Virus record (IMG/VR): IMGVR_UViG_3300027969_000039
Span: 1-64,000 of that record
DNA length: 64,000 bases
Direction: 5' to 3' (one strand)
Below the pieces are notes generated by a model, which saw nothing but the letters and a program-made list of their open reading frames with translations, made no database searches and had not been told where the DNA came from. Both the position numbers and the translations under genes were made by a program. Shown here one piece after another: positions 6,611 to 63,008 of this stretch (position 1 is its first letter; each line of letters begins with the position of its first letter).

Positions 6611-6629
6611 TACTGTGATAAATCATAGT

Positions 6630-7046
6630 ATGAGCAATACATCGGCAGGAGTTTTCTTTTATAGTAATAAAACAAACCGATACCTATATCTATTACGCAC
6701 AGACAATAAGAACCCAGGAAACTGGGGAATCCCCGGAGGAAAGATAGAAGATAATGAAACTCTTTTTGAAGGTATTGCTAGAGAATGTGCAGAAGAAATT
6801 GGTTTCTTTCCTTCTAATGCAAAACTAGTACCTATTCAGAAATTCATCAATCATACATTTACTTACCATACTTTCTTTTGTGAAGTAGTTGATGAGTTTG
6901 TTCCCATACTGAATGAAGAACATTGTGGTTATGCATGGGTAGGAGATAATCAATATCCTAAACCATTACATCCCGGGTTGTTTAGTACAGTTAATTTTGA
7001 TGTTGTTCAGGACAAGTTAAAGACACTTACAAAAAAAGAGACCTAA
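6630..7046 (+). CDS. Nudix hydrolase
   Basis: Nudix box GGKIEDNETLFEGIARECAEEIG; start refined to ATG 6630. Confidence 0.88.
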   Translation: MSNTSAGVFFYSNKTNRYLYLLRTDNKNPGNWGIPGGKIEDNETLFEGIARECAEEIGFFPSNAKLVPIQKFINHTFTYHTFFCEVVDEFVPILNEEHCGYAWVGDNQYPKPLHPGLFSTVNFDVVQDKLKTLTKKET

Positions 7047-7058
7047 GTCTCTTTTTTT
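7031..7058. terminator. bidirectional intrinsic terminator
   Basis: A-tract-GAGAC-CTAA-GTCTC-T7 between convergent genes. Confidence 0.85.
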
Positions 7059-7371
7059 ATTTTAGCAATGTTGACACTGTATTGAATCCCATTGAGCCGA
7101 TTATTACACCTGCTCCCATCATCATCCAGCGCCATTTCTCTAATACTGAAATCTTACTAGCTAATTCACCGTGTTCCTTAACATCTTGTTCACGCATAGT
7201 CTTTAACATTTGTCTAGTTTCTTCTGCGTTCTCGTCTAGGGCATCACGAATTGACTTCAAATCCATTTTAAGATCACCAATTTTATCCTCGATGTTCTTA
7301 ACTTGGATCTGAAGTACCGCAATTTCAGTTTCTGGTTGCATTTTAGGTGCCTTACTTGATGCGGTTGCCAT
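7057..7371 (-). CDS. coiled-coil protein with C-terminal TM helix (XhlA/holin-like)
   Basis: heptad coiled coil then LEKWRWMMMGAGVIIGSMG. Confidence 0.5.
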   Translation of the reverse strand: MATASSKAPKMQPETEIAVLQIQVKNIEDKIGDLKMDLKSIRDALDENAEETRQMLKTMREQDVKEHGELASKISVLEKWRWMMMGAGVIIGSMGFNTVSTLLK

Positions 7372-7373
7372 GA

Positions 7374-8648
7374 TTAAGCACTTGCAATAGTAACTAATTC
7401 ATACGGTTGACCGTTATCTGCATTAGCAACTGCTGCTGTATTGAATGTTGCAAATACTGGAGCAGCATTTTGGAACACGATATTACCAGTAGCAATTGGA
7501 CCTGAAGTAGCAGTAAACAACTCACCGGTGTGGTCAGAAAGACTTTGAACTGTTTGAGTAGCACTATTAGCATATGTAGCAAGGATACGCATTGTGTTTG
7601 GTGTCAACGCTGTATTTGCAAGATTTGCAGTAAAGCATTGTGCTGTCAACCCACTTGTTGAACCTGTTACTAGATACTTTTGTTTTCCTTTTTGACGAAC
7701 AATGTAACCTGCTTCATCATTTGCATACACGAATGCTGCATTACTTGCGATAACATTTGCATTAGCTGTTAGCACAACACGATTCATAATAGCATTTCCG
7801 GTAACACTTGCATTAGCTGTAAGCTGAACTGGTGATCCACCTTGATCAACAGAAACTGTAAATGCAGCAGCATTAGCAATAGTTTTAACAAAATATGTTG
7901 TACCAGCAGTTAATCCACCAAAAGTTGCATCAAATGTAATTGGCATATTTAATGCAAGAGTTTGTGCATTACCTGAAGTTCCAATAACATTTCCTGACAC
8001 TACTGTATTAGCAACAGCAACTGTAACATTACCTTTTGTTGCACTTGCAAAACCTAAATCAACATAATTAGTACTACCATTGATATTAGCTACAGCAACT
8101 TGTAGTGCTGCACCAGTAGTTATATTAGCTAGATCAGTACCTACACCTGCTATTACTGTACTAGTATTAACAGCGACTGGAGTATATAATGTACCTGTTC
8201 CATTGACACCAATAGCAACTTGTGCCAATACTTGTTTACCAATGATTGCTGTATTACCACCAACTACACTATATGTGTTACTATTTGTAGTAGGGAAACC
8301 TACTCCACCAAGTGGGTTATTGAAATATGCATCAACAACATTAAATGAAACACTAACTGAACCACCGGTGGTGTCTGTCAATGTTTGCATTACTTGTGGT
8401 TGTACACTTAATTGAGTTTGTGATACATCAAATGTATCATTTGACAATATTGAATTTACATAATAAATTGTGTTAGCTGTTAATCCACCAACGGTAGTAG
8501 CAACTATAAATGACATACCTTTAGCTACACCTACAGTAGGGCTTGTAGTTAAATTTCCACCTGATACTGTGACGATACTGCCTGTTTCTGCTGTATCAGT
8601 GATTGTTAAGACTGCTTGAGCCTTTGCGATTTTTAGAGGGCGTCCCAT
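7374..8648 (-). CDS. virion structural protein
   Basis: 424 aa T/A/G/N/V-rich beta protein with an internally duplicated motif (GMSFIVATTVGGLTANTIYYV / NMPITFDATFGGLTAGTTYFV); late promoter. Confidence 0.65.
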   Translation of the reverse strand: MGRPLKIAKAQAVLTITDTAETGSIVTVSGGNLTTSPTVGVAKGMSFIVATTVGGLTANTIYYVNSILSNDTFDVSQTQLSVQPQVMQTLTDTTGGSVSVSFNVVDAYFNNPLGGVGFPTTNSNTYSVVGGNTAIIGKQVLAQVAIGVNGTGTLYTPVAVNTSTVIAGVGTDLANITTGAALQVAVANINGSTNYVDLGFASATKGNVTVAVANTVVSGNVIGTSGNAQTLALNMPITFDATFGGLTAGTTYFVKTIANAAAFTVSVDQGGSPVQLTANASVTGNAIMNRVVLTANANVIASNAAFVYANDEAGYIVRQKGKQKYLVTGSTSGLTAQCFTANLANTALTPNTMRILATYANSATQTVQSLSDHTGELFTATSGPIATGNIVFQNAAPVFATFNTAAVANADNGQPYELVTIASA

Positions 8649-8668
8649 TTGTTTCTCCTTGAAATATT

Positions 8669-8736
8669 AGTGAGTTCTAGTCACTACGCGGCGGGGACCG
8701 CATAAACTCGCCGAATGCGAATGTATAATATATTTA
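8669..8736 (-). promoter_or_regulatory. late promoter plus three-hairpin structured 5' leader
   Basis: TAAATA (8731-8736) then UCGC/GCGA, UAUGCGG/CCGCGUA and AGUGA/UCACU stems, then AAGGAG RBS. Confidence 0.55.
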
Positions 8737-8760
8737 TCTCAAGGAGTAAAAATTAACCTA

Positions 8761-9288
8761 TTAGGTCATGTAACCATTTACTACATTAGGATGTGGCATA
8801 CCTAATTCAGTAATACTGAATTCAGTTCCTGCACCGCCACCAGTAGTAATAAATGCTACTACATTGCCTTGACCACAATAAACAGTATTATACTGACCTT
8901 GTGCTGGAAAAATTTGTGACTGCTGTGTAGCAATTGCGTAAGGAACACCTGCATTATTGAAAGTGTATGCAACATTTGATAGTGCTACTCCTGCATTAGC
9001 AGTAAGCGTTAAACTAGTGGCGTTTGCAATACTTGATACGATTCCCACTGTTGTTCCGGTAGTATTTCCTATCCAAGCACCAACTTCAAGCTGAGTGTTA
9101 AATGCTGTTCCCGATCCAGTGACTGTTGCACTATTAGTTGCTGCTGTCGCTGCTCCTGTGCCTGCTACTCTAGGATATCCAGTTACAGCATGAATACCAG
9201 TACCAGTAGTAGATATTCTAATCTTATCTGTTGCTATATTTGCTGATTGTTGCGATACTAAATTACCTGTATATACATATGATGTCAT
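8761..9288 (-). CDS. putative virion structural protein
   Basis: T/A/G-rich 175 aa within late structural cluster. Confidence 0.55.
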   Translation of the reverse strand: MTSYVYTGNLVSQQSANIATDKIRISTTGTGIHAVTGYPRVAGTGAATAATNSATVTGSGTAFNTQLEVGAWIGNTTGTTVGIVSSIANATSLTLTANAGVALSNVAYTFNNAGVPYAIATQQSQIFPAQGQYNTVYCGQGNVVAFITTGGGAGTEFSITELGMPHPNVVNGYMT

Positions 9289-9315
9289 TTTATTATTCCT
9301 ATATCTTATTTATTA

Positions 9316-11949: not shown

Positions 11950-12000
11950 AAGTGTAATTCTTCACGTTTACACTTATTTATCATAATATTGACTTAATCG

Positions 12001-12690
12001 CTATAGGAATTTCATATAGTATTGCTCTACACGCTTAAACCACATGTCAGAATACTTGTCAAAATCACTACCCTCAATAATAAATTCTTGGTAAATGTTG
12101 TCTTGTGTACACATAAAAATTACACCCTTGCGTATTTTTGTCCCGTGTACTTCATTGTGAGCATTAGCATATGCAGCTAATTGAACAAAATAATCATCAA
12201 TCCATTCACGCTTTTTTAATTTGTTAGATTGTTTGTGGTCCATAATAGCATCACTTCCATCATGTACTCCACACAAGTCAGTTGTGCCGGCATAAATCTT
12301 AGGGAAATACAGGGGAACTTCTGTTCCCCAGTATTCATTGCATTTTACTAATCCCTGCTCAATGATACTCTTTGCCATTTTGTGACTTTGAATACTGTAG
12401 GGATTACTTCCTGGTTCATTAACTATACCAGTCTTAATATAATCTTCAATAAACTTATGCATTCGTGTTCCACGACCTGCTGCTTCAGTTGTAATTGCTT
12501 GTGCTTTTTGAGGGCCCATTCGTTTACGCCACTCATTTAATGCTTTTTTAGATTCTTCTGATTTAGTAGCATCTAGTATTGTTGTAACACTAGGTAGCTT
12601 TTCACCATCCGGCGTAGCATATCTACGTTTACCTTCAATTTCTACCCTACTCATGGGCACATAGTTATATTTGTTTGGATTATACATCAA
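12001..12690 (-). CDS. PD-(D/E)XK exonuclease (Cas4-like, T4-like phage type)
   Basis: LPSVTTIL, RGTRMH, EVPLY..YAGTTD, DHKQS, QLAAY motifs. Confidence 0.85.
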   Translation of the reverse strand: MMYNPNKYNYVPMSRVEIEGKRRYATPDGEKLPSVTTILDATKSEESKKALNEWRKRMGPQKAQAITTEAAGRGTRMHKFIEDYIKTGIVNEPGSNPYSIQSHKMAKSIIEQGLVKCNEYWGTEVPLYFPKIYAGTTDLCGVHDGSDAIMDHKQSNKLKKREWIDDYFVQLAAYANAHNEVHGTKIRKGVIFMCTQDNIYQEFIIEGSDFDKYSDMWFKRVEQYYMKFL

Positions 12691-12732
12691 TATAATTATA
12701 TCAGATAGTATTCTGAAAGTAAATTGATTTGG

Positions 12733-14100: not shown

Positions 14101-14148
14101 ATTTGTATTCCAGAGAAATATATAATATATTTATCTTTTCTTTCTTTA

Positions 14149-14622
14149 TTATGCGGATTTGTTAAATCGTTTTTCTTGCCAAATTCTAGAACTAGACACA
14201 TATCCAGCCAATTCTTCGGTTATCTGTTTACGTTCCATCTTTTCTTCACCCAATTTAGCAAGATAAATCAATTTTTCTTCCAAATTTTTAGCCTTTTTAA
14301 CTAACTTTTGGTGTACTTGAATTTCACTATCTACGCTAGCTAATCTAGTATCCAAATCAATGATTCGGTTAGATTCGTAAATGCTGTTTTGTTTGTCAAA
14401 GGTACACCATGATACTGCATTTTTTAATACGTTGAATGTTTTGATCCCTGCAATATTGTCTTTTTCTACTGTATAGCAATCATTATTCTTTTTAATTGAA
14501 TATTTATTGAACAGAAAATAAGAACCATCTGGTCCTTGAATTATAGTTAATTCACTTAATTTTTCCATATCCGAATTGGATATTGTTTTTGTAAATTTAT
14601 TTAGTAATTTATCACTAATCAT
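14149..14622 (-). CDS. hypothetical protein
   Basis: 157-aa ORF. Confidence 0.55.
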   Translation of the reverse strand: MISDKLLNKFTKTISNSDMEKLSELTIIQGPDGSYFLFNKYSIKKNNDCYTVEKDNIAGIKTFNVLKNAVSWCTFDKQNSIYESNRIIDLDTRLASVDSEIQVHQKLVKKAKNLEEKLIYLAKLGEEKMERKQITEELAGYVSSSRIWQEKRFNKSA

Positions 14623-15064
14623 TTGTTAATACTTTAAAATATATGTTTCTTAATTCATCACTTGAATCTAAGAATGATGGAAGTTTATCCCATTCTGTCC
14701 CGCATTTAATCATTGGAACACGGTCACAATCACTATATAATGCCCCCAATTCACTTACCCCATCATAGAACACACTTGGATGTTGTACCTCAAAATCAAA
14801 GGACCAACACGGATGTGCTTCATCTTCTTCTTGTTCAAATAAGAAACCAAAATCTGTAAATTTATCAAATTGTATCAGTGTTTTTATTGGAGTACGCACA
14901 TTTTCAGGTTGACTACGCAATGAAATTGCTTGTTGCACCGTGTCAAAATTACTTTGAGTATTGCGTTTATGGCGCAATTCTTGATTCATATCTGGACGGT
15001 GACGGTTGAGTACATTAGTCTGTGTGATATCAAATAAGGTATAACAAGTGATTGTGTAACTCAT
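14615..15064 (-). CDS. hypothetical protein
   Basis: 149-aa ORF directly after TAAATA late box. Confidence 0.55.
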   Translation of the reverse strand: MSYTITCYTLFDITQTNVLNRHRPDMNQELRHKRNTQSNFDTVQQAISLRSQPENVRTPIKTLIQFDKFTDFGFLFEQEEDEAHPCWSFDFEVQHPSVFYDGVSELGALYSDCDRVPMIKCGTEWDKLPSFLDSSDELRNIYFKVLTND

Positions 15065-15082
15065 ATAGTATTTAACAGAGGT

Positions 15083-15113
15083 AAAAAAACCCTAGAAATT
15101 CTAGGGTCTTTTT
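15083..15113 (-). terminator. intrinsic terminator
   Basis: ACCCTAGA-AT-TCTAGGGT inverted repeat with A/T tracts. Confidence 0.75.
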
Positions 15114-15126
15114 AGACAGATATTGA

Positions 15127-15516: not shown

Positions 15517-15597
15517 TTTGAAATTCCTTTTAATATTTTGAAGCCTACTGCCTCATACATATATTTATGCCAGAACCAAAAAAAACACGGATTTGGA

Positions 15598-17033: not shown

Positions 17034-17071
17034 ATAATTATCCTACTTGTATTTATGCGATTCCAGAATAA

Positions 17072-18514
17072 TTATTTCTTTAATGAGTTTAACAAGGACT
17101 TTAATTTAGACCCTTGTGCATCTGCGTGTACTGTCCTAGTTAACGGTTCTAATGTAATTTCACCTGTAGTTTGATCAACCGTATAATCTGTAACTGTAGC
17201 TTGTGGTTTTAGTGTACTTATAATATCATTTGCACTAGGCTTTGGAGTATAACTCTGTTCTCCGTCAATTCCCGGGTCGCTAATACGCATAGTTTCAACA
17301 TCATATTCTAAATCAATCTTCATACCAACACCAGTTGAACTACGACTTTTCATACATTGAATCTGATATTTACCGCGCTCACGCATACTGCGGCTTGTGA
17401 AAATACCAAACACATTATCTGCTGTGTTAATCTTACTGATACCACCTGCAATGTGACTATGATCAAACTCAATTTCATCAACCGCTGTACGATTCAATTG
17501 ACTTGCTGTAACTAATAATACACCAAGTTCCTTCGCTAGATTACGCAATTCTTCTGCTACATACTTGTCTTTAATAAACTGGTCAGTTGGATTGACTTTG
17601 ATACTGACTGGCATAACTAAATCTAAGTAATCAACCATAACAAAGTCAATCTTAATCCCAGTCTGAATCTGTACCTCTTTCAAATAAGCACGGATATCAT
17701 TGACATTACTCTGAGCAGGTAAATTCTTAACACGATACTTACCAGACTTCTTGCCTGCCATTTTAACTCTAAGTTCTGTTGTATCAATGTCTTTACGAAT
17801 TGCTTTTGTACCCATCATGGTTAACATTGCATCAGTACGCAAACTTGTTAATTCTTCGCTCAATTCTAATGTAATGTAAACACCACTCATGCCCATCTGT
17901 AACCAGCTTAATGCAATGTTCATCATCACCAATGATTTACCTGAACCTGAACCACCTGCAAAGATATTCAACTCACCTCTACTCATGCCACCATAGAGAA
18001 TCTTATCCATCTGTGGCCAGCCTGTACTTACTTGTCCACCGCTGTTAAAGTATTTGTTGATGCGACCTTTAGGATCAGCAAAGTAATCTGTACCCATGTC
18101 TTTCTGTAAACTAATCTGTACCGCATCTTTGATTAGTTTTTCAACTGGTTCAAACTCACCCTTCTCCAACAAGTCTGCTGCTTTAAGAATTGCTCGTTCT
18201 AATTCTTGTCGTTTAGTAAATGATTCAAATTCATCAAAGAACCATTCATAATGTCCATCGTTCAATTCTGGAATAGGATCAATGTCTATTCCAGTTGTTG
18301 CTTTGATTTGTGTTGCATCTGGCAATACTCTATATTTGTCTGTGTGTGACTTGAACAACTCAGCCACTGGTCTAATAGAACGGTCAAAGTTTTCGCTATT
18401 CATTATGTTCATTACACGGGTATACAACTCCGCGTTTGTAACCATCATCCTCAGAAAGAGTTTCTGAACATCTGTTGTATATTCTAATTGTTTTTTAGTT
18501 TCCTGCTTTGCCAA
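17072..18514 (-). CDS. gp41: replicative DnaB-like helicase (T4 gp41-like)
   Basis: GGSGSGKS Walker A, ITLELSE, VMVDYLD, TASQLNR motifs. Confidence 0.93.
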   Translation of the reverse strand: MAKQETKKQLEYTTDVQKLFLRMMVTNAELYTRVMNIMNSENFDRSIRPVAELFKSHTDKYRVLPDATQIKATTGIDIDPIPELNDGHYEWFFDEFESFTKRQELERAILKAADLLEKGEFEPVEKLIKDAVQISLQKDMGTDYFADPKGRINKYFNSGGQVSTGWPQMDKILYGGMSRGELNIFAGGSGSGKSLVMMNIALSWLQMGMSGVYITLELSEELTSLRTDAMLTMMGTKAIRKDIDTTELRVKMAGKKSGKYRVKNLPAQSNVNDIRAYLKEVQIQTGIKIDFVMVDYLDLVMPVSIKVNPTDQFIKDKYVAEELRNLAKELGVLLVTASQLNRTAVDEIEFDHSHIAGGISKINTADNVFGIFTSRSMRERGKYQIQCMKSRSSTGVGMKIDLEYDVETMRISDPGIDGEQSYTPKPSANDIISTLKPQATVTDYTVDQTTGEITLEPLTRTVHADAQGSKLKSLLNSLKK

Positions 18515-19469
18515 TTTTCTTCCTCTGCATTTCTATTTTGATTTTACTATTTGTTGCACACTGTAGTATACTTAATAGGGTAGGTAGCTTACCATATTTA
18601 ACTACTGCATCATTTACATCTTTTACATCAACATCCCAATTAGGTAAGCTGACGCTATAACCTAATTCCAATGCTTTATCACATAGTGCTAGTCCTGTCT
18701 TATCTCTATCTGGAACTAGTATCATTTGCTTGTTCAATGTACTAAGTAGCAATGCTTGGTCGCTACTAATGTCATTGTGCATCAATGCCACCCCATCAAT
18801 ACTTAGTGCATCAAATATACCCTCTGTAACAATACACACTTGCCATTCAGGCTTTTGCATATCAATATTAAACACATACCCGGGTTGTTGTTCGTTGATG
18901 TACTTAGGGATTTTGTTATCTAAGAACCTGCTCGTATGTCCTACAATCTTGTTCTTATATGTGTAGGGTATTATAACCCTATTACCCATCCTACCCGGTT
19001 CATTTGGAGTTATCAAGAAAGGATATTCATTACTATCTATCTTCCTACTTTGCAGATATTCTACATACACTTTGTGCAATGGATTATCACTATCTACAAT
19101 CTCGCCTTCGGGTAGTTTGTGGTCATTGAATTTGATTTTTATCTTTTGTTTCTTTGGCTGAGTAAAGTCTATCAAGTCTTTTTGTTGTAAACTTTCTAAA
19201 CTCCAGCGTTTAACTTGATGGTCATCAATGCCAGACCATACTAATAGATTGCGAGTTTTTGTACTGATTGACCGACCCAATACAAAGTTACACTTGAACC
19301 CACAATTGAAACAATGCATAGACCAGTTAGTGCCATCAAACTTGATACCACCCCGCATCCGTTTGTCCTGTCTGTGACCAAAGTGGGTACAGCAGATAGC
19401 GTTAAAGCTAGTCCAACCTGAACTTGTTTGTTTCTTTTTACCGGGTAATATAGACAGGATATCAAACAT
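18495..19469 (-). CDS. gp61: DNA primase (T4 gp61-like)
   Basis: Zn finger CC.H...HCFNC; TOPRIM VTEGIFDA, PDRD..G, KDVND. Confidence 0.9.
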   Translation of the reverse strand: MFDILSILPGKKKQTSSGWTSFNAICCTHFGHRQDKRMRGGIKFDGTNWSMHCFNCGFKCNFVLGRSISTKTRNLLVWSGIDDHQVKRWSLESLQQKDLIDFTQPKKQKIKIKFNDHKLPEGEIVDSDNPLHKVYVEYLQSRKIDSNEYPFLITPNEPGRMGNRVIIPYTYKNKIVGHTSRFLDNKIPKYINEQQPGYVFNIDMQKPEWQVCIVTEGIFDALSIDGVALMHNDISSDQALLLSTLNKQMILVPDRDKTGLALCDKALELGYSVSLPNWDVDVKDVNDAVVKYGKLPTLLSILQCATNSKIKIEMQRKKIGKAGN

Positions 19470-19505
19470 CTATTGATTGTAACACAATCATAATGTTAAA
19501 GCAAA

Positions 19506-20270: not shown

Positions 20271-20356
20271 AAATGTAGGCTCCTATCAACTATTTAGTAT
20301 AATATATTAATTTAATTAACTTTGGTTACCCGATAAATAAACTGTTCACTATAATA

Positions 20357-25186: not shown

Positions 25187-25757
25187 ATTGCTTAAGTTGC
25201 TCGTCTGTGATAGTTTCATTTAGTGTCTCAATGTCTGTTATTTTCATGTTGGGGAATAGTTCTGCTAATCTAAGTTTACGCTTTTGACTATCTACAAACG
25301 CTTGACTTACCTCTGTGATATCATCTTCATGTGCTTTAGGATATATCTTCTTGTAGTATTCTCTTATATCTTTAATCTTTGCAGGCGCTTGTAGTTTACT
25401 TACTTTGGGGCTGATGTTAGGTATCCACTGATGAAATTGTTTTCCCAATGCCGGACTACTAGCACACAACATCAACCATTGTAGTTTAGGATGCTTTTGT
25501 ACATTCTCATTGAATAGATATTTGTTTGCGTGATATTCTACACTCATCAAATAATATCCTTGCAAATCACCTGATGCTTTAATCGCACTCATCCATTGAA
25601 TCATTGTGAATGGTACAAACTTCTTTTGTTGTTCTATTGATAACTTATCATAGAAGCCATAGTCTTTCTTATCTAATGCAGCAAGGACCTCAAACAAGTC
25701 TAAATCTTGTTTATCAAACTTTTCATCAACCGGGATTGCTGCTTTTCTTGTTGCCAT
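25164..25757 (-). CDS. clamp loader small subunit (T4 gp62-like)
   Basis: LFEVLAALDKKD...FVPFTMIQWMS...HPKLQWLML...FHQWI pattern; within replication cluster. Confidence 0.5.
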   Translation of the reverse strand: MATRKAAIPVDEKFDKQDLDLFEVLAALDKKDYGFYDKLSIEQQKKFVPFTMIQWMSAIKASGDLQGYYLMSVEYHANKYLFNENVQKHPKLQWLMLCASSPALGKQFHQWIPNISPKVSKLQAPAKIKDIREYYKKIYPKAHEDDITEVSQAFVDSQKRKLRLAELFPNMKITDIETLNETITDEQLKQYERDLGN

Positions 25758-26257
25758 TAAAATGCCTGACTATAATCTACTATCTCACAATTACGACTAA
25801 TCTCTTTTACAAAATATATACATGCGGGTTTAGGACCATCTTCAATTGGCACACATAGAAACTGCCCGTTCTTTAATCTAGGTGCATACCATGTTACATC
25901 GTGATAGATATCTAATATCTCAATGGGCAAGAATGTAGGACTGAAACTACTCAATGGATTAAACTCAAACGCATTAAATCCCCTATCATTGATACTTGTT
26001 AATGGTAGTGTTTCTAAGTCACCGTGTTCTTTTTCACCAATCAATATCTGCCAGTCTACTGGCATCTTAATTGTGTGTTTACCAATCTTCAATACAAGTG
26101 CAGGGGCATTAAAACTTTCTAAAAAGATTAATGGTATATAATGATAATCTACATTACTTGGGTTACTGTTATCTAGTATCGCAAATCGTAAATCATCTAT
26201 CTCCTCTGGCAATGTCTCTAAGTTATAGTATTCGTTATCTAGGGTCAAAATTCTCAT
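25757..26257 (-). CDS. hypothetical protein, possible Hint-like beta fold
   Basis: beta-rich; LVLKIGKHTIKMPVDWQILI resembles Hint block B spacing. Confidence 0.4.
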   Translation of the reverse strand: MRILTLDNEYYNLETLPEEIDDLRFAILDNSNPSNVDYHYIPLIFLESFNAPALVLKIGKHTIKMPVDWQILIGEKEHGDLETLPLTSINDRGFNAFEFNPLSSFSPTFLPIEILDIYHDVTWYAPRLKNGQFLCVPIEDGPKPACIYFVKEISRNCEIVDYSQAF

Positions 26258-26269
26258 AGTGTTATTATA

Positions 26270-27757: not shown

Positions 27758-27807
27758 ATTAGTACTTAGTATAACATAAAGTAATTAGTAAATGCAAACA
27801 TAAAGGT

Positions 27808-27832
27808 AAAAAAAGGGGAACCTAAGTTCCCC
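27808..27832 (-). terminator. intrinsic terminator
   Basis: GGGGAAC-ctaa-GTTCCCC with T-tract on minus strand. Confidence 0.85.
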
Positions 27833-27855
27833 TGAAAATCAGTAAGTAAATCTAC

Positions 27856-38994: not shown

Positions 38995-39013
38995 AATTGT
39001 ATTTATCTTAATC

Positions 39014-40567: not shown

Positions 40568-40611
40568 AACTTTATTTATGTGGATAACTACCCAATTATA
40601 TAATTAGGTAA

Positions 40612-45378
<4,767 letters not shown>

Positions 45379-45393
45379 CTATCTATTTAACTG

Positions 45394-47112
45394 TTAAAGA
45401 GTAATGTAACCCCAATTTACTACTTGTGATGTTCCGCTATTGTTTGTAATACCAAATGTAAACACATTAGCAGTTGTAGTACTAACCACAGCATTACTAA
45501 TATTGTTCACAGTTCCAACAATCTGCGTGGGTATCGCTGTAAGTACTAATGCATTACCTGCTGCATAATACCAACCATAACTACTACCTACTACCGGAAC
45601 ATTGGTATTTGTAACAACCACTGTAGCAGTATATGTAACAATACCATTTGGAATATTTCCTCTAACCCATAATGAGTAAGTACCGTTTATAGGAACCGTA
45701 ATACTTACTGTGTTAGTACCTGCTGATAATGTCCAACTACCAGTTGTTGAGCCTGCACCCACACCAGTAGCACCTGTAATGCCTGTACTACCAGTTGCGC
45801 CAGTTGGTCCTGTAGCACCACTAGCGCCAGTTGTACCTACACCAGTAGCACCTGTGGCGCCCGGGCCAGTAGCACCGGTCGAACCATTGTATCCAGTAGC
45901 ACCAGTTGCGCCTGTACTTCCTACTCCTTGTACTCCTGCGATACTAGTATCAAGCCACAATATATTATGATCGACAGGAGCAGTAGATTGAGCAATTAAA
46001 CCTTGCTCACCTGTTGCACCTGTGCTACCTAAACCAGTTGCTCCAATGGCACCTGTTGCACCTGTGCTACCTAAACCAGTTGCGCCCGTAGCGCCTGTTG
46101 TACCTATATAACCAGTTGCGCCAGTAGCACCTGTTGTGCCTATATAACCAGTTGCGCCAGTAGCACCTGTTGTGCCTACAAAACCGGTTGCTCCTGTTGC
46201 ACCTGTACTACCAATATAACCCGTAGCACCCGTTGCTCCAGTTGTACCTACAACGCCGGTGGCGCCAGTAGTGCCTGTGGCGCCAGTGGTACCAATCTCG
46301 CCTGTTGCACCTGTTGCGCCTATCCCAGTAGCGCCAGTGGAGCCTTCATTGCCTATATTACCAGTAGCACCTGTTGCACCATTGTAGCCGGTAGCACCAG
46401 TAGACCCAGCCCCGGCTGGTCCGGTTGCACCTGTTGATCCTGTACCAGATGGTCCGGTTGCTCCTGTACTACCTATTGCACCTGTTGCACCAGTAGAACC
46501 ACCAGCTCCCCCACCGCCACCAGCGAAAGGGGTGCCATTAGCATAGAAATAGTTGTCAGTATAAATTGCGTTTGGTACTACATTGCCACTTGCATTTAAA
46601 TTTATCGTATCAACATTGCCATATATCAATGCATATGATGCTGAAAAATTTGTAGTGTTAAGTGCAGCATTTGCTTGATCCCAAGTTAAACTAGGACTAC
46701 CATCAAAGTTACCTGTATTGTTAAATTGAATCTGTCCATTGCCACCGCCTACTTCGCCGTTACCGGATCCACCACCTGTAACCCAAGTAAGATTACCGGC
46801 TCCATCTGTTACTAAATATTGACCGCTATTGCCACCGGTGACTTTGAATGTACCTATACTTAAAGTACCAACTCGTGTGATATTGGGTTGTGCTGCATTT
46901 ACTACAGAATATGCTAAATTAGCTAATGCTGCCGGTGCAAAATTTGCACCTCCTGCACCGGATAATATTAAATTTCCTGCAACTTGCATGTTAGCTTTTT
47001 GTGTTACAGGGTCTCCGGACATGTTAACAACCGGAAATAACGAATTAGCCGCTATATTGCTACCTATATTAGGTAACTCTGTTATTTTAATTGTTAAATT
47101 AGACGTAGCCAT
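45394..47112 (-). CDS. collagen-like tail fibre protein
   Basis: long G-X-T repeat; N-term KITELP..; start refined to MATSNL with AAGGA RBS. Confidence 0.78.
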
Positions 47113-47154
47113 TAAATATCCTTTTATTCTTGTATTTATCAACAGTGGACATGG

Positions 47155-49251: not shown

Positions 49252-49292
49252 ATCTAAATCCTAAACTATAGTGTATTTATCACTATTTTGGA

Positions 49293-49562
49293 TTAGTTAG
49301 CTTCATCCCATAACTTCTTCTGAGTCAGGTACCACTCAATCCAGCTGTCATATTTACTTGCACATTCGTGGTATGTGCCGTAGTTTTTAATGACGGATTT
49401 AGTAAAATCTACGATTGTGACGGTATCACCTTCAATAGTTTCTAGTTGCTTAGGGCAACCTTTTAATAAAGTAGCAGGAGCCTCAGGGAATTTAGGAGTT
49501 AATGGAACAGGAGTGCTGCAAGATGTTAGGAAAACAGCGGCTAGTATAATTAAGTATTTCAT
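49293..49562 (-). CDS. outer-membrane spanin (Rz1-like lipoprotein)
   Basis: lipobox FLTSC, Pro-rich N-term, YHEC motif. Confidence 0.75.
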   Translation of the reverse strand: MKYLIILAAVFLTSCSTPVPLTPKFPEAPATLLKGCPKQLETIEGDTVTIVDFTKSVIKNYGTYHECASKYDSWIEWYLTQKKLWDEAN

Positions 49563-50020
49563 TTTGTTATTTCGTGTGGTATTGTTGCTGCTTCATTCAC
49601 AGATTTTAATATAACTTGAGGAATCGCAGGACAGTTCTCAATATATTTGATTACCTCGTTGTCTTTGACTACTTCCTTGTCAATATATTTTATAATATCT
49701 TGACCTTTTGTTCTGATGTATTCTGTTTTGGTGACTACTTTTTCTACAATTTTTACATTTTCTTCTTGTGAAACTGCTTCTTTTGTCGCTAGTTTAGCTT
49801 CAACCTCTTTGACTTTTAGTTGCCAAGATTCTTCGTTAGCTAACCCGCCTTCTATATAAAGTCCAAAACTCAATAATAATAAACTGATTATCTGTATGGG
49901 TAGTTGATATGTTCTGATGAAGGGGATGAAACCTAGAATAAATCCAGCGATAGTTCCTAATATTCCCGCTATTAATATTAGATGAGTTACTAAATCAGGA
50001 AGAAAGTGTAGTATGAACAT
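49559..50020 (-). CDS. inner-membrane spanin (Rz-like)
   Basis: N-term TM helices, coiled coil, overlaps o-spanin gene. Confidence 0.7.
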   Translation of the reverse strand: MFILHFLPDLVTHLILIAGILGTIAGFILGFIPFIRTYQLPIQIISLLLLSFGLYIEGGLANEESWQLKVKEVEAKLATKEAVSQEENVKIVEKVVTKTEYIRTKGQDIIKYIDKEVVKDNEVIKYIENCPAIPQVILKSVNEAATIPHEITK

Positions 50021-50028
50021 GCATATAT

Positions 50029-50988
50029 TTATCTATAATAGTCTGAGTTTTTCAACCAGTTGTAGTAGTTTTGAAAGCCTTCTTCCACATCAGTTTTAGG
50101 ATTGAATCCAAAGTCTTGTCTAGCTGCATCAATATTCAATGCTCCGCGACTTGGAAAATCAATATCTTTTGCGCCAACTTCTAAATGACCGCCACCAGCT
50201 AATTCTAGTGCCATCTGTGCAGCCTTGAGTAGGGTGACGCTGTGGCTCTTTGTGATGTTGTATGTCTTGTTCTCTGTATTGTCGCTTAATGCTGCTGCTA
50301 CAATACCATCAGCCGCATCATCTACATAAGTGAAGTCTAGTTTTTCATGCTCACCATTGACTTTCAGTACTTTGCCCCGCATTGCTGTGAGTAAGAATTT
50401 GCTGATGACACGATCCTCTACATCGAATGGTCCATAAACAGCACTGGGGCGAATAATAGTATGAACAAGATTAGTACGGCGAGTATAGTCTTTAACAAGC
50501 CATTCACCCGCGAGTTTGAGTATTCCATATTGTCCTTGTGGTTTGCATTCATAATCTTCCTTTACATCATCTTTAAAATCACCATATACCATAGACGAAC
50601 TAATATAGATGAACTTACGAACATCGTAATTGTTACTAGATTCTAATAGATTGAGTAATCCTTCGCTCATAGTACGGCTACCTAATGCTGGATTACTATT
50701 GACAACTTTCTGTCTAGGAAAGCTAGCCATGTGAATCACGATCTCCGGTTCTTCAATTCTAAAAATGTTATCTATTTCTTTAGCGTATGTGATATCTGTC
50801 ACATACTGAAAACTCGTATCACCAATCTTCTTTTGTCGTTCAGCCATGAGATAATCAATCTCACTTTGAGGGATGATACCATAGTTAGTCTTGTTATCAA
50901 TTATTGATACTGTATGTCCTTGATCCTGTAATCGTTTTACTACATTGTGACCGATTAGGCCCATACCGCCTGTTACTAATATGTTCAT
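50029..50988 (-). CDS. NAD-dependent NDP-sugar epimerase/dehydratase
   Basis: GGMGLIG, SSSMVYG, YGILK, RPSAVYGP, DFTYVDD. Confidence 0.9.
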   Translation of the reverse strand: MNILVTGGMGLIGHNVVKRLQDQGHTVSIIDNKTNYGIIPQSEIDYLMAERQKKIGDTSFQYVTDITYAKEIDNIFRIEEPEIVIHMASFPRQKVVNSNPALGSRTMSEGLLNLLESSNNYDVRKFIYISSSMVYGDFKDDVKEDYECKPQGQYGILKLAGEWLVKDYTRRTNLVHTIIRPSAVYGPFDVEDRVISKFLLTAMRGKVLKVNGEHEKLDFTYVDDAADGIVAAALSDNTENKTYNITKSHSVTLLKAAQMALELAGGGHLEVGAKDIDFPSRGALNIDAARQDFGFNPKTDVEEGFQNYYNWLKNSDYYR

Positions 50989-53156: not shown

Positions 53157-53223
53157 AAATTATTCTCCTTGAGTACATAGATATTTAATATCTAATGTAT
53201 ACAAGTAAATATTTTTATGAGTG

Positions 53224-56798: not shown

Positions 56799-57218
56799 TT
56801 ATTCCTCAAACGCGCGGCGCAGAATCAACTCTTGGCGACTGAAGGCTTCAATCTCCCAGGGTTGGTCCAAGTAAGGTGTTTTCTTGCTGTACTTTTTACC
56901 TGCCCATGTATGACCATGCTTACCTTGTTTCAATGTACCTTTTGCAAACTGTTTCACATGGACCAATTCATGCGCTAGGGTGAGGCCAATTTGATACAGA
57001 CTACGATGGGGTTTGATGACTACCAGATATGCACCAGTGTACTGTGATAGGTCGAGTGTCAAGCCTGCATTGTCACCTTCGCATTCATCATATACACGGA
57101 TAAGCAATGCTTTGCGGCAACGCTCAAGACCAAGCTGGGTAATCATTGAAGGAAGTAGTGCCTCAACAAATTTTTTATTACGGCGACTACCTTCAACTTT
57201 GATTTCCATCATAATCAT
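56799..57218 (-). CDS. small HExxH zinc metallopeptidase
   Basis: LAHELVHVKQF...PWEIEA. Confidence 0.8.
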   Translation of the reverse strand: MIMMEIKVEGSRRNKKFVEALLPSMITQLGLERCRKALLIRVYDECEGDNAGLTLDLSQYTGAYLVVIKPHRSLYQIGLTLAHELVHVKQFAKGTLKQGKHGHTWAGKKYSKKTPYLDQPWEIEAFSRQELILRRAFEE

Positions 57219-60543: not shown

Positions 60544-60547
60544 AGTA

Positions 60548-60757
60548 TTACTTAGTAGCGGCTTTTGCAGGCTCAGTTTTAGTTGTAGCTTTTTTGTCTT
60601 TGACAGTTTTAGAACTTTTGGTAGAGTCCTGTTTGGAACCCTCCTTTTTCTTAGCCAACTTCATTTCTTCCTTAGCTGGAGCAGCAGGTTTGGCAGGCTC
60701 AGTAGCAAAAGCAATAGTTGTAGCCAAAGTAGCGATAAGAATAGCGAGAATTTTCAT
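60548..60757 (-). CDS. small secreted K/A/P-rich protein
   Basis: signal peptide MKILAILIATLATTIAFA, low-complexity mature part. Confidence 0.7.
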   Translation of the reverse strand: MKILAILIATLATTIAFATEPAKPAAPAKEEMKLAKKKEGSKQDSTKSSKTVKDKKATTKTEPAKAATK

Positions 60758-61022
60758 TTAAGTTTCCTTTAAAGTTAATGATATTTATGTTTGATATATT
60801 CATCCTTCAATCTACATGGTCCAATACGCTTTTCATCACAATTGGATTTTCTCCAATCATAACCAGTGGGCAAATATTGTTCCTGATACGATTCAGTTTT
60901 ATCCGTTTTCGTAACATCGTAGCATTCAGTTTGATTTTTATCTTGCATACATATATAACGACCCTCAGGATAAAACCGTTGACAAGATACAAAACTCTTT
61001 TCCCATTTACGCTAAATAGTTG

Positions 61023-61511
61023 ATGCAATACATATCTTACCAAGGAATTTATGACGGAACCAACTTTGAGGATGCTGCTACGCCCAAACAAATAACCAAA
61101 TCCATGAATGCTGGGTTTAGCACTATGGTAAATGTTTGGCGAATTAGCGGAAAACTCTATTTAGGTGTTACCCAACCCATAACCGAAGTGACCGAAAAGT
61201 ATCTACAAGGTCCTAGGTTTTGGTTGAATGCTATGAATACTGATATGCAATCATGGATAGTAACTCAACCAATTAAGTCATATCCAAATTACTTTTGGTT
61301 TCCTACTGATACAGAAAGTACCCCAGTGACCGCAAGTAATGGAAAAATTATTACTCCTGGAACAGTTGCTATAAACAACACCAGTGTTATATTTCTGCCT
61401 GAGATACAGGATAGAGGAATGTTTAGTACAGTACACCTAAAATGTTTCGGTGTATGTAGTAACTACTTGTCTTTTATTAAACGAATGCGTAACGAAGGTG
61501 AGTGGTATTAA
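61023..61511 (+). CDS. GDPD/PLC-like TIM-barrel homologue with degenerate catalytic residues
   Basis: ISYQG..., MVNVW, LYLGVT align to SHRG, EIDVW, LYLGHD; start refined to ATG 61023. Confidence 0.5.
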   Translation: MQYISYQGIYDGTNFEDAATPKQITKSMNAGFSTMVNVWRISGKLYLGVTQPITEVTEKYLQGPRFWLNAMNTDMQSWIVTQPIKSYPNYFWFPTDTESTPVTASNGKIITPGTVAINNTSVIFLPEIQDRGMFSTVHLKCFGVCSNYLSFIKRMRNEGEWY

Positions 61512-61678
61512 CCACCGCGCCCTGCTCTACGCACAACACTAGCCCCACCAAATCCTTTACTATTAGCTTTAGGACCTTTACTTTTAGGAGCCTTACCTAA
61601 TCCAGAATTTGCCATTGCGTTTTTCTTTTTAGCTTCTAATGCCATTGCTATTGGATTCTTTTTCTTTTCTTCGGTCAT
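61508..61678 (-). CDS. 56-aa basic protein
   Basis: MTEEKKKNPIAMALEAKKK...VRRAGRGG; coupled to upstream gene. Confidence 0.6.
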   Translation of the reverse strand: MTEEKKKNPIAMALEAKKKNAMANSGLGKAPKSKGPKANSKGFGGASVVRRAGRGG

Positions 61679-62064
61679 TGTCTTATCCTCACTGATTCTA
61701 AATAACTTTCTATATCACCATATAGTGCTAGCATCATTGCTATCTTACTATCATAAAGTCTGATGAAAGGTTCTTTTGACTCTGCATCCTTATTTACACT
61801 AAAATAATATGGACATTTAATTTTCTTATTACATTCAGTTAAAAATTTATACCAATTAGTTTTCTTAACTTTAACAGGAAGATCAAAGAATTCTATTTGC
61901 GCCTGTCTAAAATTTATATCACCTTGTGGTGTCAGACGCAGGCTATCACCTGATTTGGTGAACCACCAATCACTTATGATTGTTTCAAATGGAATATTAT
62001 TGCTAGGCAGTTGATCCATAACTGCCTTAGTGATAGTGTATTTTAGTTTTTTTCTGTCACTCAT
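61675..62064 (-). CDS. hypothetical protein
   Basis: GDSLRLTPQG...CPYYF motif. Confidence 0.6.
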   Translation of the reverse strand: MSDRKKLKYTITKAVMDQLPSNNIPFETIISDWWFTKSGDSLRLTPQGDINFRQAQIEFFDLPVKVKKTNWYKFLTECNKKIKCPYYFSVNKDAESKEPFIRLYDSKIAMMLALYGDIESYLESVRIRQ

Positions 62065-62350
62065 CCGGGTACACAGTAGTACCGTTGTTCATAAAAACGA
62101 CAGTAAACTTATCTGTCTTGAATTGATTGTTTAGTTTACGACAGAGGTTTCGTGCATGACCAGGATTACTGAAACTTGTTTTCTTATACTTAGGTGTAGC
62201 CTCATTGTCTAAGTAATGCTGAGATTTTAAGTTGATAGGTTGTCTATCATAGAATACAGCCCATATGCCACTTGCTTCTACAATTTGGTCGCACTTATAG
62301 GTAGTTTTATCTACTAGTTCTAATAATACTTTTGGTTGTGTTCTACTCAT
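62057..62350 (-). CDS. conserved phage hypothetical protein
   Basis: PKYKKTSFSNPGHARNLCRKLN. Confidence 0.65.
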   Translation of the reverse strand: MSRTQPKVLLELVDKTTYKCDQIVEASGIWAVFYDRQPINLKSQHYLDNEATPKYKKTSFSNPGHARNLCRKLNNQFKTDKFTVVFMNNGTTVYPDE

Positions 62351-62550
62351 TAAAATTTACCTCCGATGACTTCTATTTCAATCACTTCGGAAGTGTTCTT
62401 CTTTCCTTCAGTAACTTCATAGTGATCTATCAATAATTTAGCCAATTCATCACGCAAACTTCTAGCATCTGATAATGGAATTACCACATCTTTACCTTGT
62501 CTACCTTCGATAACAGCTACTCTATCAATAAATCTTTTTATATGAAACAT
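62350..62550 (-). CDS. hypothetical protein
   Basis: 66 aa; late box 4 nt before ATG. Confidence 0.6.
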   Translation of the reverse strand: MFHIKRFIDRVAVIEGRQGKDVVIPLSDARSLRDELAKLLIDHYEVTEGKKNTSEVIEIEVIGGKF

Positions 62551-63008
62551 CAGATATTTATCAACTTTTTAGCTTCGTCCTCAGTTTTGTACGGACCCTC
62601 ATACTCATAACGCTGTATAAAGATGTATTTAGGGCAAAAAACTACTGTAGGTTCTTCACTTTGATACATAACATACCATCCTGCCGCATGATAACACTTG
62701 CTTTTAGTTGTTTTAGTGAATAAATGTATTTTGCGCTTGATGTCCAACATAGAATTGTAGACCTTCTTTGTTGTTGGATATTCATTAAAAGGTATTTCTT
62801 TTTTAATCTTTTCTGCTTTTGTTTGTTGAAACTCTATGCTAGTTTGTTTTTTAATAGCACTAGTGTTTTTAAAATGAGTTTTACTGCCGTTGAGTTTTAC
62901 TTCAAAGCCTGAACCATCAGCAATAACATTTCCTACCTTTGATGTACCATCAGTAACAATCCAGAATTGATTCTTAACTACGGGTTTTGCGATTAGTGGT
63001 TTTGACAT
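62550..63008 (-). CDS. hypothetical protein
   Basis: KSKCYHAAGWY...FCPKYIFIQRY.Y.GPYKT. Confidence 0.6.
   Translation of the reverse strand: MSKPLIAKPVVKNQFWIVTDGTSKVGNVIADGSGFEVKLNGSKTHFKNTSAIKKQTSIEFQQTKAEKIKKEIPFNEYPTTKKVYNSMLDIKRKIHLFTKTTKSKCYHAAGWYVMYQSEEPTVVFCPKYIFIQRYEYEGPYKTEDEAKKLINI

Follow-up and report, generated by a model that had tools for sequence, protein, structure and literature searches.

We found that the late-promoter box of an uncultured freshwater jumbo phage lies 4-5 nt before the start codons of a set of genes without an SD, and this close spacing is confirmed as real and far above chance. The DNA analysed here (the window, 64 kb) is the first part of a 303-kb IMG/VR contig, a record that is 86% complete. 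The phage genome has 37% GC, and its kin are PA5oct, GAP32 and Phosso; its large terminase (TerL) is 43-50% identical to those of Rak2-like phages (CBB, GAP32), PA5oct and Phosso.

We consider it likely that the phage as a whole combines two promoter types with both leaderless and SD-led mRNAs. The phage would use host RNA polymerase at ordinary sigma70 promoters, TTGACA-N17-(TGn)TATAAT, and, with a gp55-family sigma factor of its own, at T4-type late promoters, (G)ATAAATA(C). The spacer between box and start codon is 4-6 nt (occasionally 7) long at roughly half of the putative late promoters, and in a smaller set of candidate sigma70 promoters 6-7 nt separate the -10 hexamer from the start codon. 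The transcription start would then coincide with the A of the ATG or differ from it by no more than a base or two. Since such mRNAs have no room for an SD, their translation would have to be leaderless, with the ribosome binding the 5'-terminal AUG. The remaining late promoters, 14-27 nt or more upstream, would yield short leaders, most with a canonical SD. Two modes of initiation would thus work side by side in this phage, any regulatory purpose being presumptive. Polycistronic read-through transcripts probably also exist; hence, translation by coupling or another SD-independent route could occur as well. The same would hold in its relatives, where about half of the T4-style late promoters and some ordinary early promoters likewise lie close enough to the start codon for the mRNA to begin with the AUG.

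Spacing of the late box across the genome

The distance d was taken from TAAATA (335 sites in the 303-kb genome) to the first ATG of an ORF from our own ORF calls, at sites chosen so that this ATG was first in frame. The histogram had the sharp peak at 4-5 nt that the original prediction expected for SD-less genes: 17 genes without an SD fell there (10 at d=4 and 7-8 at d=5). About 40 genes formed a second mode at d=17-26, with an SD between box and ATG, and d=8-12 was almost empty. When hexamers 4 nt before first-ATG ORFs were scanned, TAAATA was the commonest and the sole non-SD hexamer enriched. The pattern recurred genome-wide in relatives: a 524-kb one, G006, had 45 genes of the 4-5 nt type, 21 at d=4 and 24 at d=5, and G007 had 3 and 8.

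It is very improbable that these sites arise by chance or annotation artefact, with the true starts lying downstream behind an SD. TAAATA is indeed common at 37% GC and the gene calls are home-made, but same-composition control hexamers and the reverse complement TATTTA were flat. T4, PA5oct, GAP32 and Phosso, all of similar or lower GC, had the SD-led mode only and no 4-5 nt peak, so that boxes at 4-5 nt numbered 17 of 335 here versus 2 of 1146 in these four phages (Fisher, p = 8e-10). The spacing is also conserved in 60-plus diverged relatives. In addition, the ATGs are first in frame, nearly all of them also lacking an upstream in-frame GTG or TTG in the phage's own genome, and the JGI gene calls give the same starts for TerL and a 931-aa virion structural protein.

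Both spacing classes, leaderless-type and SD-led as originally proposed, shared one extended box context, with A at -1 in 72% of the boxes of either class (22% background), and also G at -2 and C at +1. Hence, the box appears to be one DNA signal rather than a separate RNA element. At the leaderless-type sites the median anti-SD energy was +0.6 kcal/mol, and only 3 of 90 were at or below -5. Alternatively, the box could act in RNA, as an A/U-rich element of polycistronic late transcripts from starts further upstream, where it would enhance translation without an SD or serve as a ribosome standby site. Many genes lie 4-22 nt behind a same-strand gene, SD use is low (32% of long ORFs versus 60% in T4), and a 4-6 nt spacing resembles that from SD to AUG, all of which would suit such an element. 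We nevertheless regard it as improbable, because the same motif and flanks occur 14-27 nt before SD-led genes, where they cannot substitute for an SD, and because the box lacks complementarity to the anti-SD that other genes clearly use. Also against it, the phage encodes a sigma factor predicted to read the box, sigma70 -10 hexamers peak equivalently at their own +1 distance, and several of the genes have a terminator or a divergent gene immediately before them.

The late box and its sigma factor

The late-box consensus, (G)ATAAATA(C), is TATAAATA-like and has no conserved -35 element; positions 5' of the box carried zero information in 64 aligned TerL promoters and in 184 pooled boxes. T4 late promoters are alike in their (G)ATAAATA box (TATAAATA, -13 to -6), in lacking a conserved -35, in their gp55-family sigma factor and in placing the box before virion genes (PMC2988020). 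Here, boxes precede the genes for TerL, virion structural proteins, tail fibres, baseplate wedge and hub, portal and head-tail adaptor, and the major capsid gene is directly 3' of a box-preceded gene. A few boxes precede metabolic genes (the SD-led RNR, ligase and PstS), and these may be chance or dual-use sites.

We found a gp55-family sigma factor gene at 219954-220865 of the phage genome (G000, plus strand, 303 aa), which matched phrog_12791, 'sigma factor for late transcription' (7e-73), and phrog_234 (3e-21); T4 gp55 matched it by tblastn with E = 1.4e-5. PA5oct, Phosso, GAP32 and the close relatives G006-G009 have orthologs, and ATAAATA was predicted as a late promoter in CBB and GAP32 (PMC5259590). 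These features support the assignment of the box as a putative T4-type late promoter.

With the T4 box at -13 to -6, a 5-nt spacer places the A of the ATG at +1, and spacings of 4, 6 and 7 nt would need a start-site shift of 1-2 nt from the T4 rule, or a leader of 1-2 nt. T4 has the co-activator gp33 and the sliding clamp gp45; here neither gave a significant tblastn match and Pfam DNA_PPF had none in the 86%-complete record, while a gp44 clamp-loader homolog was found (1e-23). CBB is reported to show the same lack of gp33 and gp45 (PMC5259590). With no match to either protein, the late machinery, and hence the start-site distance, may differ from those of T4.

Close-spaced late boxes in the window

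The original prediction named eight ATGs with TAA(A/G)T(A/C) 4-5 nt upstream and no SD. All eight are present and none has an SD, with anti-SD duplex energies of -1.4 to +1.7 kcal/mol versus -5 to -12 in SD-led genes. Six have an exact TAAATA, at d=5 (minus-strand starts 40567, 38994 and 50020) or d=4 (15064 and 62550, minus strand; 61023, which is on the plus strand, a correction), and two have variant boxes at 5 nt, TAAATC before a Nudix hydrolase gene (6630, plus strand) and TAAGTA before a UvsW-like helicase gene (27757, minus strand). The pattern holds for the first seven and is weak for UvsW, which fits a sigma70 promoter better and is not conserved.

The TerL start (40565-40578, minus strand) has TAAATA at 40573-40578, a 5-nt spacer and the ATG of the large terminase gene (39014-40567), with no SD (+1.6 kcal/mol). 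Among relatives with TerL 80-98% identical, 64 of 67 distinct upstream regions had the box 4-6 nt before the ATG, although the rest of the upstream DNA is not conserved. By eye, terminator-like hairpins and T-runs were seen upstream in several TerL relatives. The 931-aa virion structural protein (38992-39005, minus strand; gene 36199-38994) has its box at 39000-39005, 5 nt from the ATG, and a spacing of 4-7 nt was found in 57 of 61 distinct relatives, with protein identities as low as 42%.

Before the 149-aa protein (15062-15125, minus strand; gene 14615-15064), an intrinsic terminator hairpin and T-run (~15087-15112) are followed by the box (15069-15074), 4 nt and the ATG, a leaderless-type layout that G006 and G007 share, with d=5. 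Because of the terminator, a transcript would have to start within the 22 nt between stem and ATG. For the 162-aa protein (61013-61025, plus strand; gene 61023-61511), the box at 61013-61018 lies between divergent genes, 4 nt before the ATG, and G006 keeps d=4. For the Nudix hydrolase (6619-6632, plus strand; gene 6630-7046), TAAATC at 6619-6624 is 5 nt from the ATG. Its orthologs have the same spacing, with ATAAATC in G006 and ATAAATG in G007, and the ATG is first in frame in both; in the window an upstream in-frame ATG with a weak SD lies at 6579.

Two further sites adjoin an upstream stop codon. The 153-aa protein (50018-50031, minus strand; gene 49559-50020) has its box at 50026-50031, 5 nt from the ATG, and the TAA of the box doubles as the stop codon of an epimerase-like gene; orthologs have d=5 in G007 and d=8 in G006. 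The label i-spanin given to this protein could not be confirmed, as it matches only the PHROG 'signal peptide motif'. For the 66-aa protein (62548-62560, minus strand; gene 62350-62550), the box at 62555-62560 is 4 nt from an ATG that overlaps the upstream gene's stop codon, with d=4 kept in G006, and translational coupling is possible.

Such sites invite the reading that boxes are promoters for downstream genes only, with the adjacent ATG served by termination-reinitiation coupling and the spacing a by-product of short intergenic regions. The genome is compact, about half of the leaderless-type genes lying only 4-22 nt behind a same-strand gene. However, the spacing is equally tight in long intergenic regions (44, 62, 96 and 265 nt) and in divergent ones (five leaderless-type genes, 49-265 nt). 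Coupling predicts a 0-15 nt spread, whereas we found a 4-5 nt peak and an 8-12 nt gap. Moreover, the TAA of the box is a stop codon in the epimerase-like case only, and among relatives, as for the 931-aa gene, the upstream gene ends at differing positions while the box-ATG spacing is retained. We therefore think this explanation improbable as well, and retain promoters that would start leaderless mRNAs.

Late boxes followed by longer leaders

The 1585-aa tail-fibre protein (45367-45389, minus strand) belongs to the short-leader class, with its box at 45384-45389, 14 nt from the ATG. Late genes with long SD-containing leaders had been placed at 7374, 15127 and 45394, which are stop ends of minus-strand ORFs; the starts are 8648, 15516 and 47112. 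All three do have an SD in the leader, with boxes 82 nt (8731-8736), 45 nt (15562-15567) and 20 nt (47133-47138) upstream, the first two giving long leaders. The last is the 572-aa tail-fibre protein (47110-47138, minus strand), with AAGGA as the SD; a TTG at 47142 sits inside the box, and hence ATG 47112 is the likely start. A 424-aa protein designated gp13 has no PHROG match, leaving that label unconfirmed.

Further SD-led boxes between 1307 and 20339 are 1329-1334 (19 nt to the ATG), 3489-3494 (plus strand, 20 nt), 9307-9312 (18 nt), 11975-11980 (25 nt), 14128-14133 (27 nt), 17050-17055 (16 nt) and 20334-20339 (plus strand, 17 nt). On the minus strand between 49249 and 60787 they are 49274-49279 (22 nt, ATG 49251), 53182-53187 (25 nt, ATG 53156) and 60782-60787 (24 nt, ATG 60757). 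A late box also lies 37 nt before the gene for bS21.

Sigma70-type promoters abutting start codons

Restricting close spacing to late promoters proved too narrow, since sigma70-type extended -10 promoters (TTGACA-N17-TGnTATAAT) also lie 6-7 nt from the ATG of primase, exonuclease and other genes. Across the genome TATAAT peaks at d=6, exactly the distance that places the A of the ATG at +1.

The 166-aa protein (26255-26292, minus strand; gene 25757-26257) has TTGAAA (26287-26292), N17, TGaTATAAT (-10 at 26264-26269), 6 nt and the ATG, and G006 keeps TTGACA-N17-TATAAT with 6 nt. It is predicted to be a leaderless-type early or middle gene. DNA primase (19467-19504, minus strand; gene 18495-19469) has TTGCTT, N17, TGtTACAAT (-10 at 19476-19481), 6 nt and the ATG; with TGnTATACT, 6 nt and ATG in G006 and G007, the arrangement is found in 3 of 3 genomes. 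For the exonuclease (12685-12700, minus strand; gene 12001-12687), the extended -10 TGaTATAAT (12695-12700) is 7 nt from ATG 12687, and G006 has TTGCAT-N17-TATAAT, 6 nt and ATG.

The UvsW-like helicase (27755-27850, minus strand; gene 26270-27757) has a terminator (~27810-27835), TTGCAT (27792-27797), an 18-nt spacer ending in TGt, TATACT (27768-27773), 10 nt and the ATG, with TAAGTA at 27763-27768 and no SD. Neither G006 nor G007 has kept this upstream arrangement. The transcript would be near-leaderless whether it came from a variant late box or from a sigma70-type promoter, the better fit.

Comparison with known systems

Leaderless transcripts have been mapped in the Thermus phages phiYS40 (YS40) and Lalka27a, whose late promoters, like those here, lack a -35 element and need a phage factor (bioRxiv 10.64898/2026.04.20.719267). 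Their host phylum is Deinococcus-Thermus, where leaderless genes are the norm. Those promoters are sigmaA-based (TAGGGT-type -10 in Lalka) and most of the transcripts are leaderless, whereas here the promoters are gp55-type, the two classes are about equal in size with many SD-led genes, and starts are deduced from sequence.

A -10 element adjoining the ORF is accepted as a mark by which leaderless genes are recognised (PMC3160421, PMC12340547), and it was found here as peaks at d=4-5 (late box) and d=6 (TATAAT) conserved among relatives (TerL, 931-aa gene, primase). The 'TA-led' genes of Actinobacteria and Deinococcus-Thermus, and lambda cI from PRM, likewise have a -10 a few fixed bases before the ORF, no SD and an AUG, and the primase, exonuclease and 166-aa protein genes, with their sigma70-type promoters, resemble them in this. 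Those genes are cellular or from a temperate phage, whereas here dozens of genes in a lytic-type jumbo phage and two promoter classes are involved.

In T4 the box lies at least 12 nt, mostly 17-30 nt, before the start and never at 4-6 nt, unlike about half of the boxes here. CBB, GAP32, PA5oct and Phosso are alike in TerL kinship and a gp55-like sigma factor, and the late motif is reported for CBB and GAP32 (PMC5259590); PA5oct, GAP32 and Phosso differ in having SD-led spacing only. The gene after TerL has a box and SD leader in PA5oct, Phosso, GAP32 and Atu_ph07; here it is the 931-aa gene and leaderless-type. Leaderless phage mRNAs are already known from Thermus phages, and what appears new is the conserved gp55-type layout, lacking in T4 and the named relatives compared.

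A broader proposal seems unlikely: a widespread freshwater clade of jumbo phages would run a dual initiation programme, with leaderless mRNAs from about half of the gp55-type late promoters and part of the sigma70 promoters, and the phage's own IF1 and bS21 would adjust host ribosomes during infection so as to favour or balance the leaderless and SD-led classes. The earlier idea that the classes separate low-copy from high-copy proteins is only loosely consistent with their membership: the leaderless-type genes include those for TerL, a gp5-like hub and a small wedge protein, and a strong SD precedes the major capsid gene, but a deoxyribonucleotidase is in the leaderless class too, and RNR, ligase and PstS are among the SD-led genes with boxes.

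The phage and its relatives

The record (G000) is linear, 303,057 bp long, 37% GC and 86% complete by CheckV; the window covers its bases 1-64000, where the minus strand carries most genes. Megablast of 12 kb against a phage collection found no near relative among named phages, and kinship to these is detectable at the protein level only: the terminase large subunit (TerL; window 39014-40567, -) shares 43-50% identity with its counterparts in Sinorhizobium phage Phosso, Pseudomonas phage PA5oct, Agrobacterium phage Atu_ph07 and the GAP32/CBB group. In IMG/VR, TerL has at least 600 matches, in genomes of up to 524 kb, including the relative G006 (524,565 bp, rated complete; TerL 87% identical), and JGI lake-metagenome contigs of up to 363,713 bp carry the same TerL protein. 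The clade is large, environmental and apparently abundant. Since the longer JGI contig Ga0209087_1000001 (363,713 bp; L189) has an identical TerL, the 303-kb record probably falls short of the full genome, which may be about 360 kb. Gene calls were our own; the two checked against JGI calls, TerL (517 aa) and the 931-aa gene after it, have identical starts.

Late boxes peak 4-5 nt before start codons

We measured, over the whole genome, the distance (d) between the late box TAAATA and an ATG opening an ORF of at least 60 codons, and found the peak at 4-5 nt that the original prediction had called for. The distances are bimodal, with 10 cases at d = 4 and 8 at d = 5, almost none at d = 8-12, and a second, wide mode spanning d = 17-26 in which a Shine-Dalgarno (SD) motif (AGGA, GGAG or AAGG) lies between box and ATG. 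Control hexamers of the same composition gave 0-2 cases per bin (isolated bins up to 8), and the reverse complement TATTTA gave zero at d = 4-5. In an unbiased count of every hexamer that ends 4 nt ahead of a first-ATG ORF, TAAATA ranks first and is the sole non-SD hexamer enriched there. Nearly all of the ATGs at d = 4 or 5 are the earliest possible start in their frame. Boxes at these two distances make up 17 of 335 here versus 2 of 1146 in T4, PA5oct, 320 kb of GAP32 and 400 kb of Phosso (Fisher p = 8e-10), phages that have the SD-led mode only. The peak recurs in G006 (21 at d = 4, 24 at d = 5) and in a second relative, G007 (191 kb; 3 and 8). We refer to genes with a box 4-6 nt (occasionally 7) from the ATG and no SD as leaderless-type, a class defined by layout.

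All eight sites first proposed for this layout are present, and six have the exact box: at d = 5 before ATGs 40567 (TerL), 38994 (931 aa) and 50020, and at d = 4 before ATGs 15064 (149 aa), 62550 (66 aa) and 61023 (162 aa, + strand). The other two have variants at d = 5, TAAATC before the Nudix gene (6630) and TAAGTA before UvsW (27757). The absence of an SD also held, with anti-SD duplex energies of -1.4 to +1.7 kcal/mol versus -5 to -12 kcal/mol for SD-led neighbours. The SD-led genes named for comparison do have a box and an SD in the leader, but the positions given for them (7374, 15127 and 45394) are ORF stop ends; the corresponding starts are 8648, 15516 and 47112, with the box 82, 45 and 20 nt upstream, respectively.

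At window 47112-47142, the longest ORF of the tail-fibre gene (572/582 aa, -) opens at TTG 47142, which falls inside the late box region (TTGATAAATA). ATG 47112, with its AAGGA SD and 20 nt past the box, is likely the start.

The box and the late sigma factor

The original prediction took the box for a T4-type late promoter, and in agreement with this, the phage encodes a gp55-family sigma factor (G000 219954-220865, +; phrog_12791 'sigma factor for late transcription', 7e-73; T4 gp55, 1.4e-5). For CBB and GAP32, an ATAAATA motif preceding structural genes has been reported, along with a gp55-like protein (PMC5259590). Since the 8-bp late box of T4 starts at -13 (PMC2988020), it ends at -6, and a 5-nt spacer sets the A of the ATG at +1. 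Pooling the boxes of this genome and two relatives (90 leaderless-type, 94 SD-led), we found A at flanking position -1 in 72% of each class versus 22% at other TAAATA sites; G at -2 and C at +1 are enriched in both classes as well. Hence, a box adjoining an ATG and one placed 20 nt upstream represent a single signal. No match to gp33 or gp45 was found with T4 queries or Pfam DNA_PPF. Similarly, the Pfam gp19 tube and sheath models had no match; a PHROGs tail-sheath family matched at window 5234-6610.

In the mechanism we propose, host RNA polymerase carrying the phage gp55-like sigma factor would initiate late transcription at the purine of the ATG, host sigma70 polymerase would do so at early or middle genes, and the resulting 5'-AUG mRNAs would enter the leaderless translation route, with the remaining late genes using short SD leaders.

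The layout is conserved

Among 80 IMG/VR loci with TerL 80-98% identical (of at least 600 matches), TAAATA lies at d = 4, 5 or 6 before TerL in 64 of 67 distinct upstream sequences (6, 28 and 30, respectively). The other upstream positions hold essentially zero information, and the first codons vary mostly at synonymous positions. A hairpin and T-run just before the box were noted by eye in several of these relatives. For the 931-aa virion protein, the box is at d = 4-7 in 57 of 61 distinct upstream sequences (29, 20, 1 and 7), and the spacing is kept down to 42% protein identity. In distant MAG-binned relatives (TerL 52-76%), the TerL layout is mostly gone, whereas the 931-aa ortholog often retains its own. 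In comparison, the gene after TerL has a box and an SD leader in PA5oct, Phosso, GAP32 and Atu_ph07. The d = 4 spacing is kept in orthologs of the 162-aa and 66-aa genes, and ATAAAT(C/G) at d = 5 in Nudix orthologs. In the clade, the coupling of promoter to start codon is maintained by selection in dozens of genes.

Sigma70-type promoters also adjoin start codons

TATAAT peaks exactly 6 nt before first ATGs (9 matches against a background of about 1), and in 5 of the 9 the ATG is the first in its frame. Most of these sites have an extended -10 (TGn) and, at 17 nt, a TTGACA-like -35 element. For sigma70, 6 nt after the -10 element likewise sets the A of the ATG at +1. Hence, the ATG-adjacent layout is not specific to late promoters. 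In the window, this arrangement precedes a 166-aa gene (26257), an exonuclease (12687), where d = 7, and DNA primase (19469), where the hexamer is TACAAT. The primase layout recurs in each of the three genomes, and those of the 166-aa and exonuclease genes are shared with G006, where TATAAT occurs 12 times at d = 6 and 6 times at d = 5.

UvsW was put forward as a late leaderless gene, and it does have TAAGTA at 5 nt and no SD, but upstream of its ATG we found, in order, a terminator, TTGCAT, an 18-nt spacer, TGtTATACT and 10 nt. The sigma70-type class thus fits better than the late class. Since its layout is not conserved, UvsW is the weakest of the eight cases.

Upstream context limits the transcript start

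At the 149-aa gene (15064), the stem of an intrinsic terminator ends 22 nt before the ATG; the box is the only conserved element between them, and orthologs keep the order terminator, box, ATG. Within this genome, we detected a terminator directly upstream in only two cases, 15064 and 27757. Five leaderless-type genes (61023, 172317, 112874, 124057 and 144859) have a divergently oriented neighbour 49-265 nt away. About half of the leaderless-type genes have a same-strand gene 4-22 nt upstream, and with gaps this short, read-through transcripts and translational coupling may contribute to expression. At 62550, the ATG and the upstream stop codon overlap. We also considered stop-start coupling in which the box's TAA doubles as the stop codon of the upstream gene; this is true at 50020 only.

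Late boxes 12-14 nt before the ATG were seen at the portal gene (G000 230232, +; d = 12, no evident SD) and a tail fibre gene (window 45369, -). A start 6 nt past the box would leave a 6-9 nt leader, cutting into or excluding an SD, and these boxes may form an intermediate, short-leader class.

What the two classes encode

Among late genes, the leaderless-type class includes TerL, two virion proteins (931 and 204 aa), a small wedge protein of the baseplate, a deoxyribonucleotidase and, at d = 6, a 1344-aa gp5-like hub/lysozyme; many further ORFs in it have no assigned function. SD-led boxes precede genes for tail fibres, a gp6-like wedge protein, virion proteins, an adaptor, ribonucleotide reductase (RNR), ligase and PstS. 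The 70 nt before the major capsid gene (Pfam Gp23, 8e-99) contain a strong GGAG and lack the box; the gene's upstream neighbour is a box-bearing 366-aa gene. These assignments are loosely in line with the suggested division into low-copy and high-copy virion proteins, read as enzymes and low-copy parts leaderless and the capsid SD-led; this support is anecdotal, and counter-examples exist. TAAATA lies 18-26 nt upstream, with an SD, of the genes for a PstS-like phosphate-binding protein (G000 160556-161551, -), the RNR large subunit (G000 267518-269833, +) and DNA ligase (G000 152811-154145, -); either these are expressed late too, or the boxes occur by chance.

Host and initiation factors

Among long ORFs, 32% here have an SD duplex at or below -5 kcal/mol versus 60% in T4, which is compatible with a host that initiates translation well without an SD. 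We also found a near-identical early promoter and leader cassette of about 75 nt in at least 11 copies in G000, six of them in the window (28887, 29414, 31884, 57753, 58048 and 58461, all -) and at least five elsewhere. Each runs TTGACA, a conserved 17-nt spacer, TATAAT and a 32-34-nt leader with an SD, followed by small ORFs of 64-343 aa; the conserved leader core (CTTAGACAGT-like) could be a regulatory RNA or a protein-binding site. The repeated consensus TTGACA-N17-TATAAT cassettes argue for a host with a canonical sigma70 and, with the canonical SDs, would speak against a Bacteroidota host. MAGs containing contigs of the clade (L193-L200) are labeled Chitinophaga, Haliscomenobacter, Lishizhenia, Crocinitomicaceae, Aquiluna, Legionellales, Polynucleobacter and Gammaproteobacteria; as host evidence we set these aside, since they probably reflect bin contamination. 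Atlas look-ups for the host returned viral or mixed taxa.

Two translation genes lie outside the window: IF1 (71 aa; PF01176, 4e-21; G000 122177-122392, -; L202:1495-1710) and bS21 (73 aa; PF01165, 1.6e-13; G000 146895-147116, -; L201:1453-1674). No match to IF3_C was found. IF1 is directly upstream of a leaderless-type 184-aa gene, Fe/Mn superoxide dismutase-like by eye, and bS21 has TAAATA 37 nt upstream and is preceded by a ClpX-like 402-aa ORF.

Relation to known leaderless mRNAs

T4-type late transcription is a textbook system whose mRNAs are assumed to be SD-led. Leaderless transcripts were mapped in Thermus phages YS40 and Lalka27a, according to a preprint (bioRxiv 10.64898/2026.04.20.719267), and the AR9 paper describes phage transcripts as often leaderless. 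A -10 box adjoining an ORF is an accepted signature of leaderless genes (PMC3160421, PMC12340547). The PA5oct transcriptome paper gives TATAATA/TTGAC promoters only, and a survey of huge phages lists IF1 and S21 genes with leaderless mRNAs unmentioned (PMC7162821). In the literature searched, we found no report of leaderless mRNAs from T4-type late promoters, nor, by targeted search, from jumbo phages or cyanophages. What appears to be new here, from sequence, is a T4-type late promoter coupled directly to the start codon in dozens of genes. This offers a testable case in which a lytic phage could split its proteome between two initiation pathways; it suggests a concrete role for the initiation factors and bS21 carried by huge phages, and the host would be expected to translate 5'-terminal AUGs well. 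SD-reliant gene finders will misplace starts in these genomes; the box-to-ATG rule locates starts precisely and maps the promoters as well, with sequence as its only input.

Divergent gene pairs and clustered ATGs

Divergent gene pairs about 30-65 nt apart have late boxes that are back-to-back or overlapping palindromic (e.g. TATTTATAC-GTATAAATA). In G000 these are 287528(-)/287585(+), 95538(-)/95571(+), 144859(-)/144916(+) and 172252(-)/172317(+), and their arrangement suggests bidirectional late promoters. At window 57209-57218 (-), a 139-aa ORF has three in-frame candidate start ATGs after TAAATA, at d = 1, 7 and 10.
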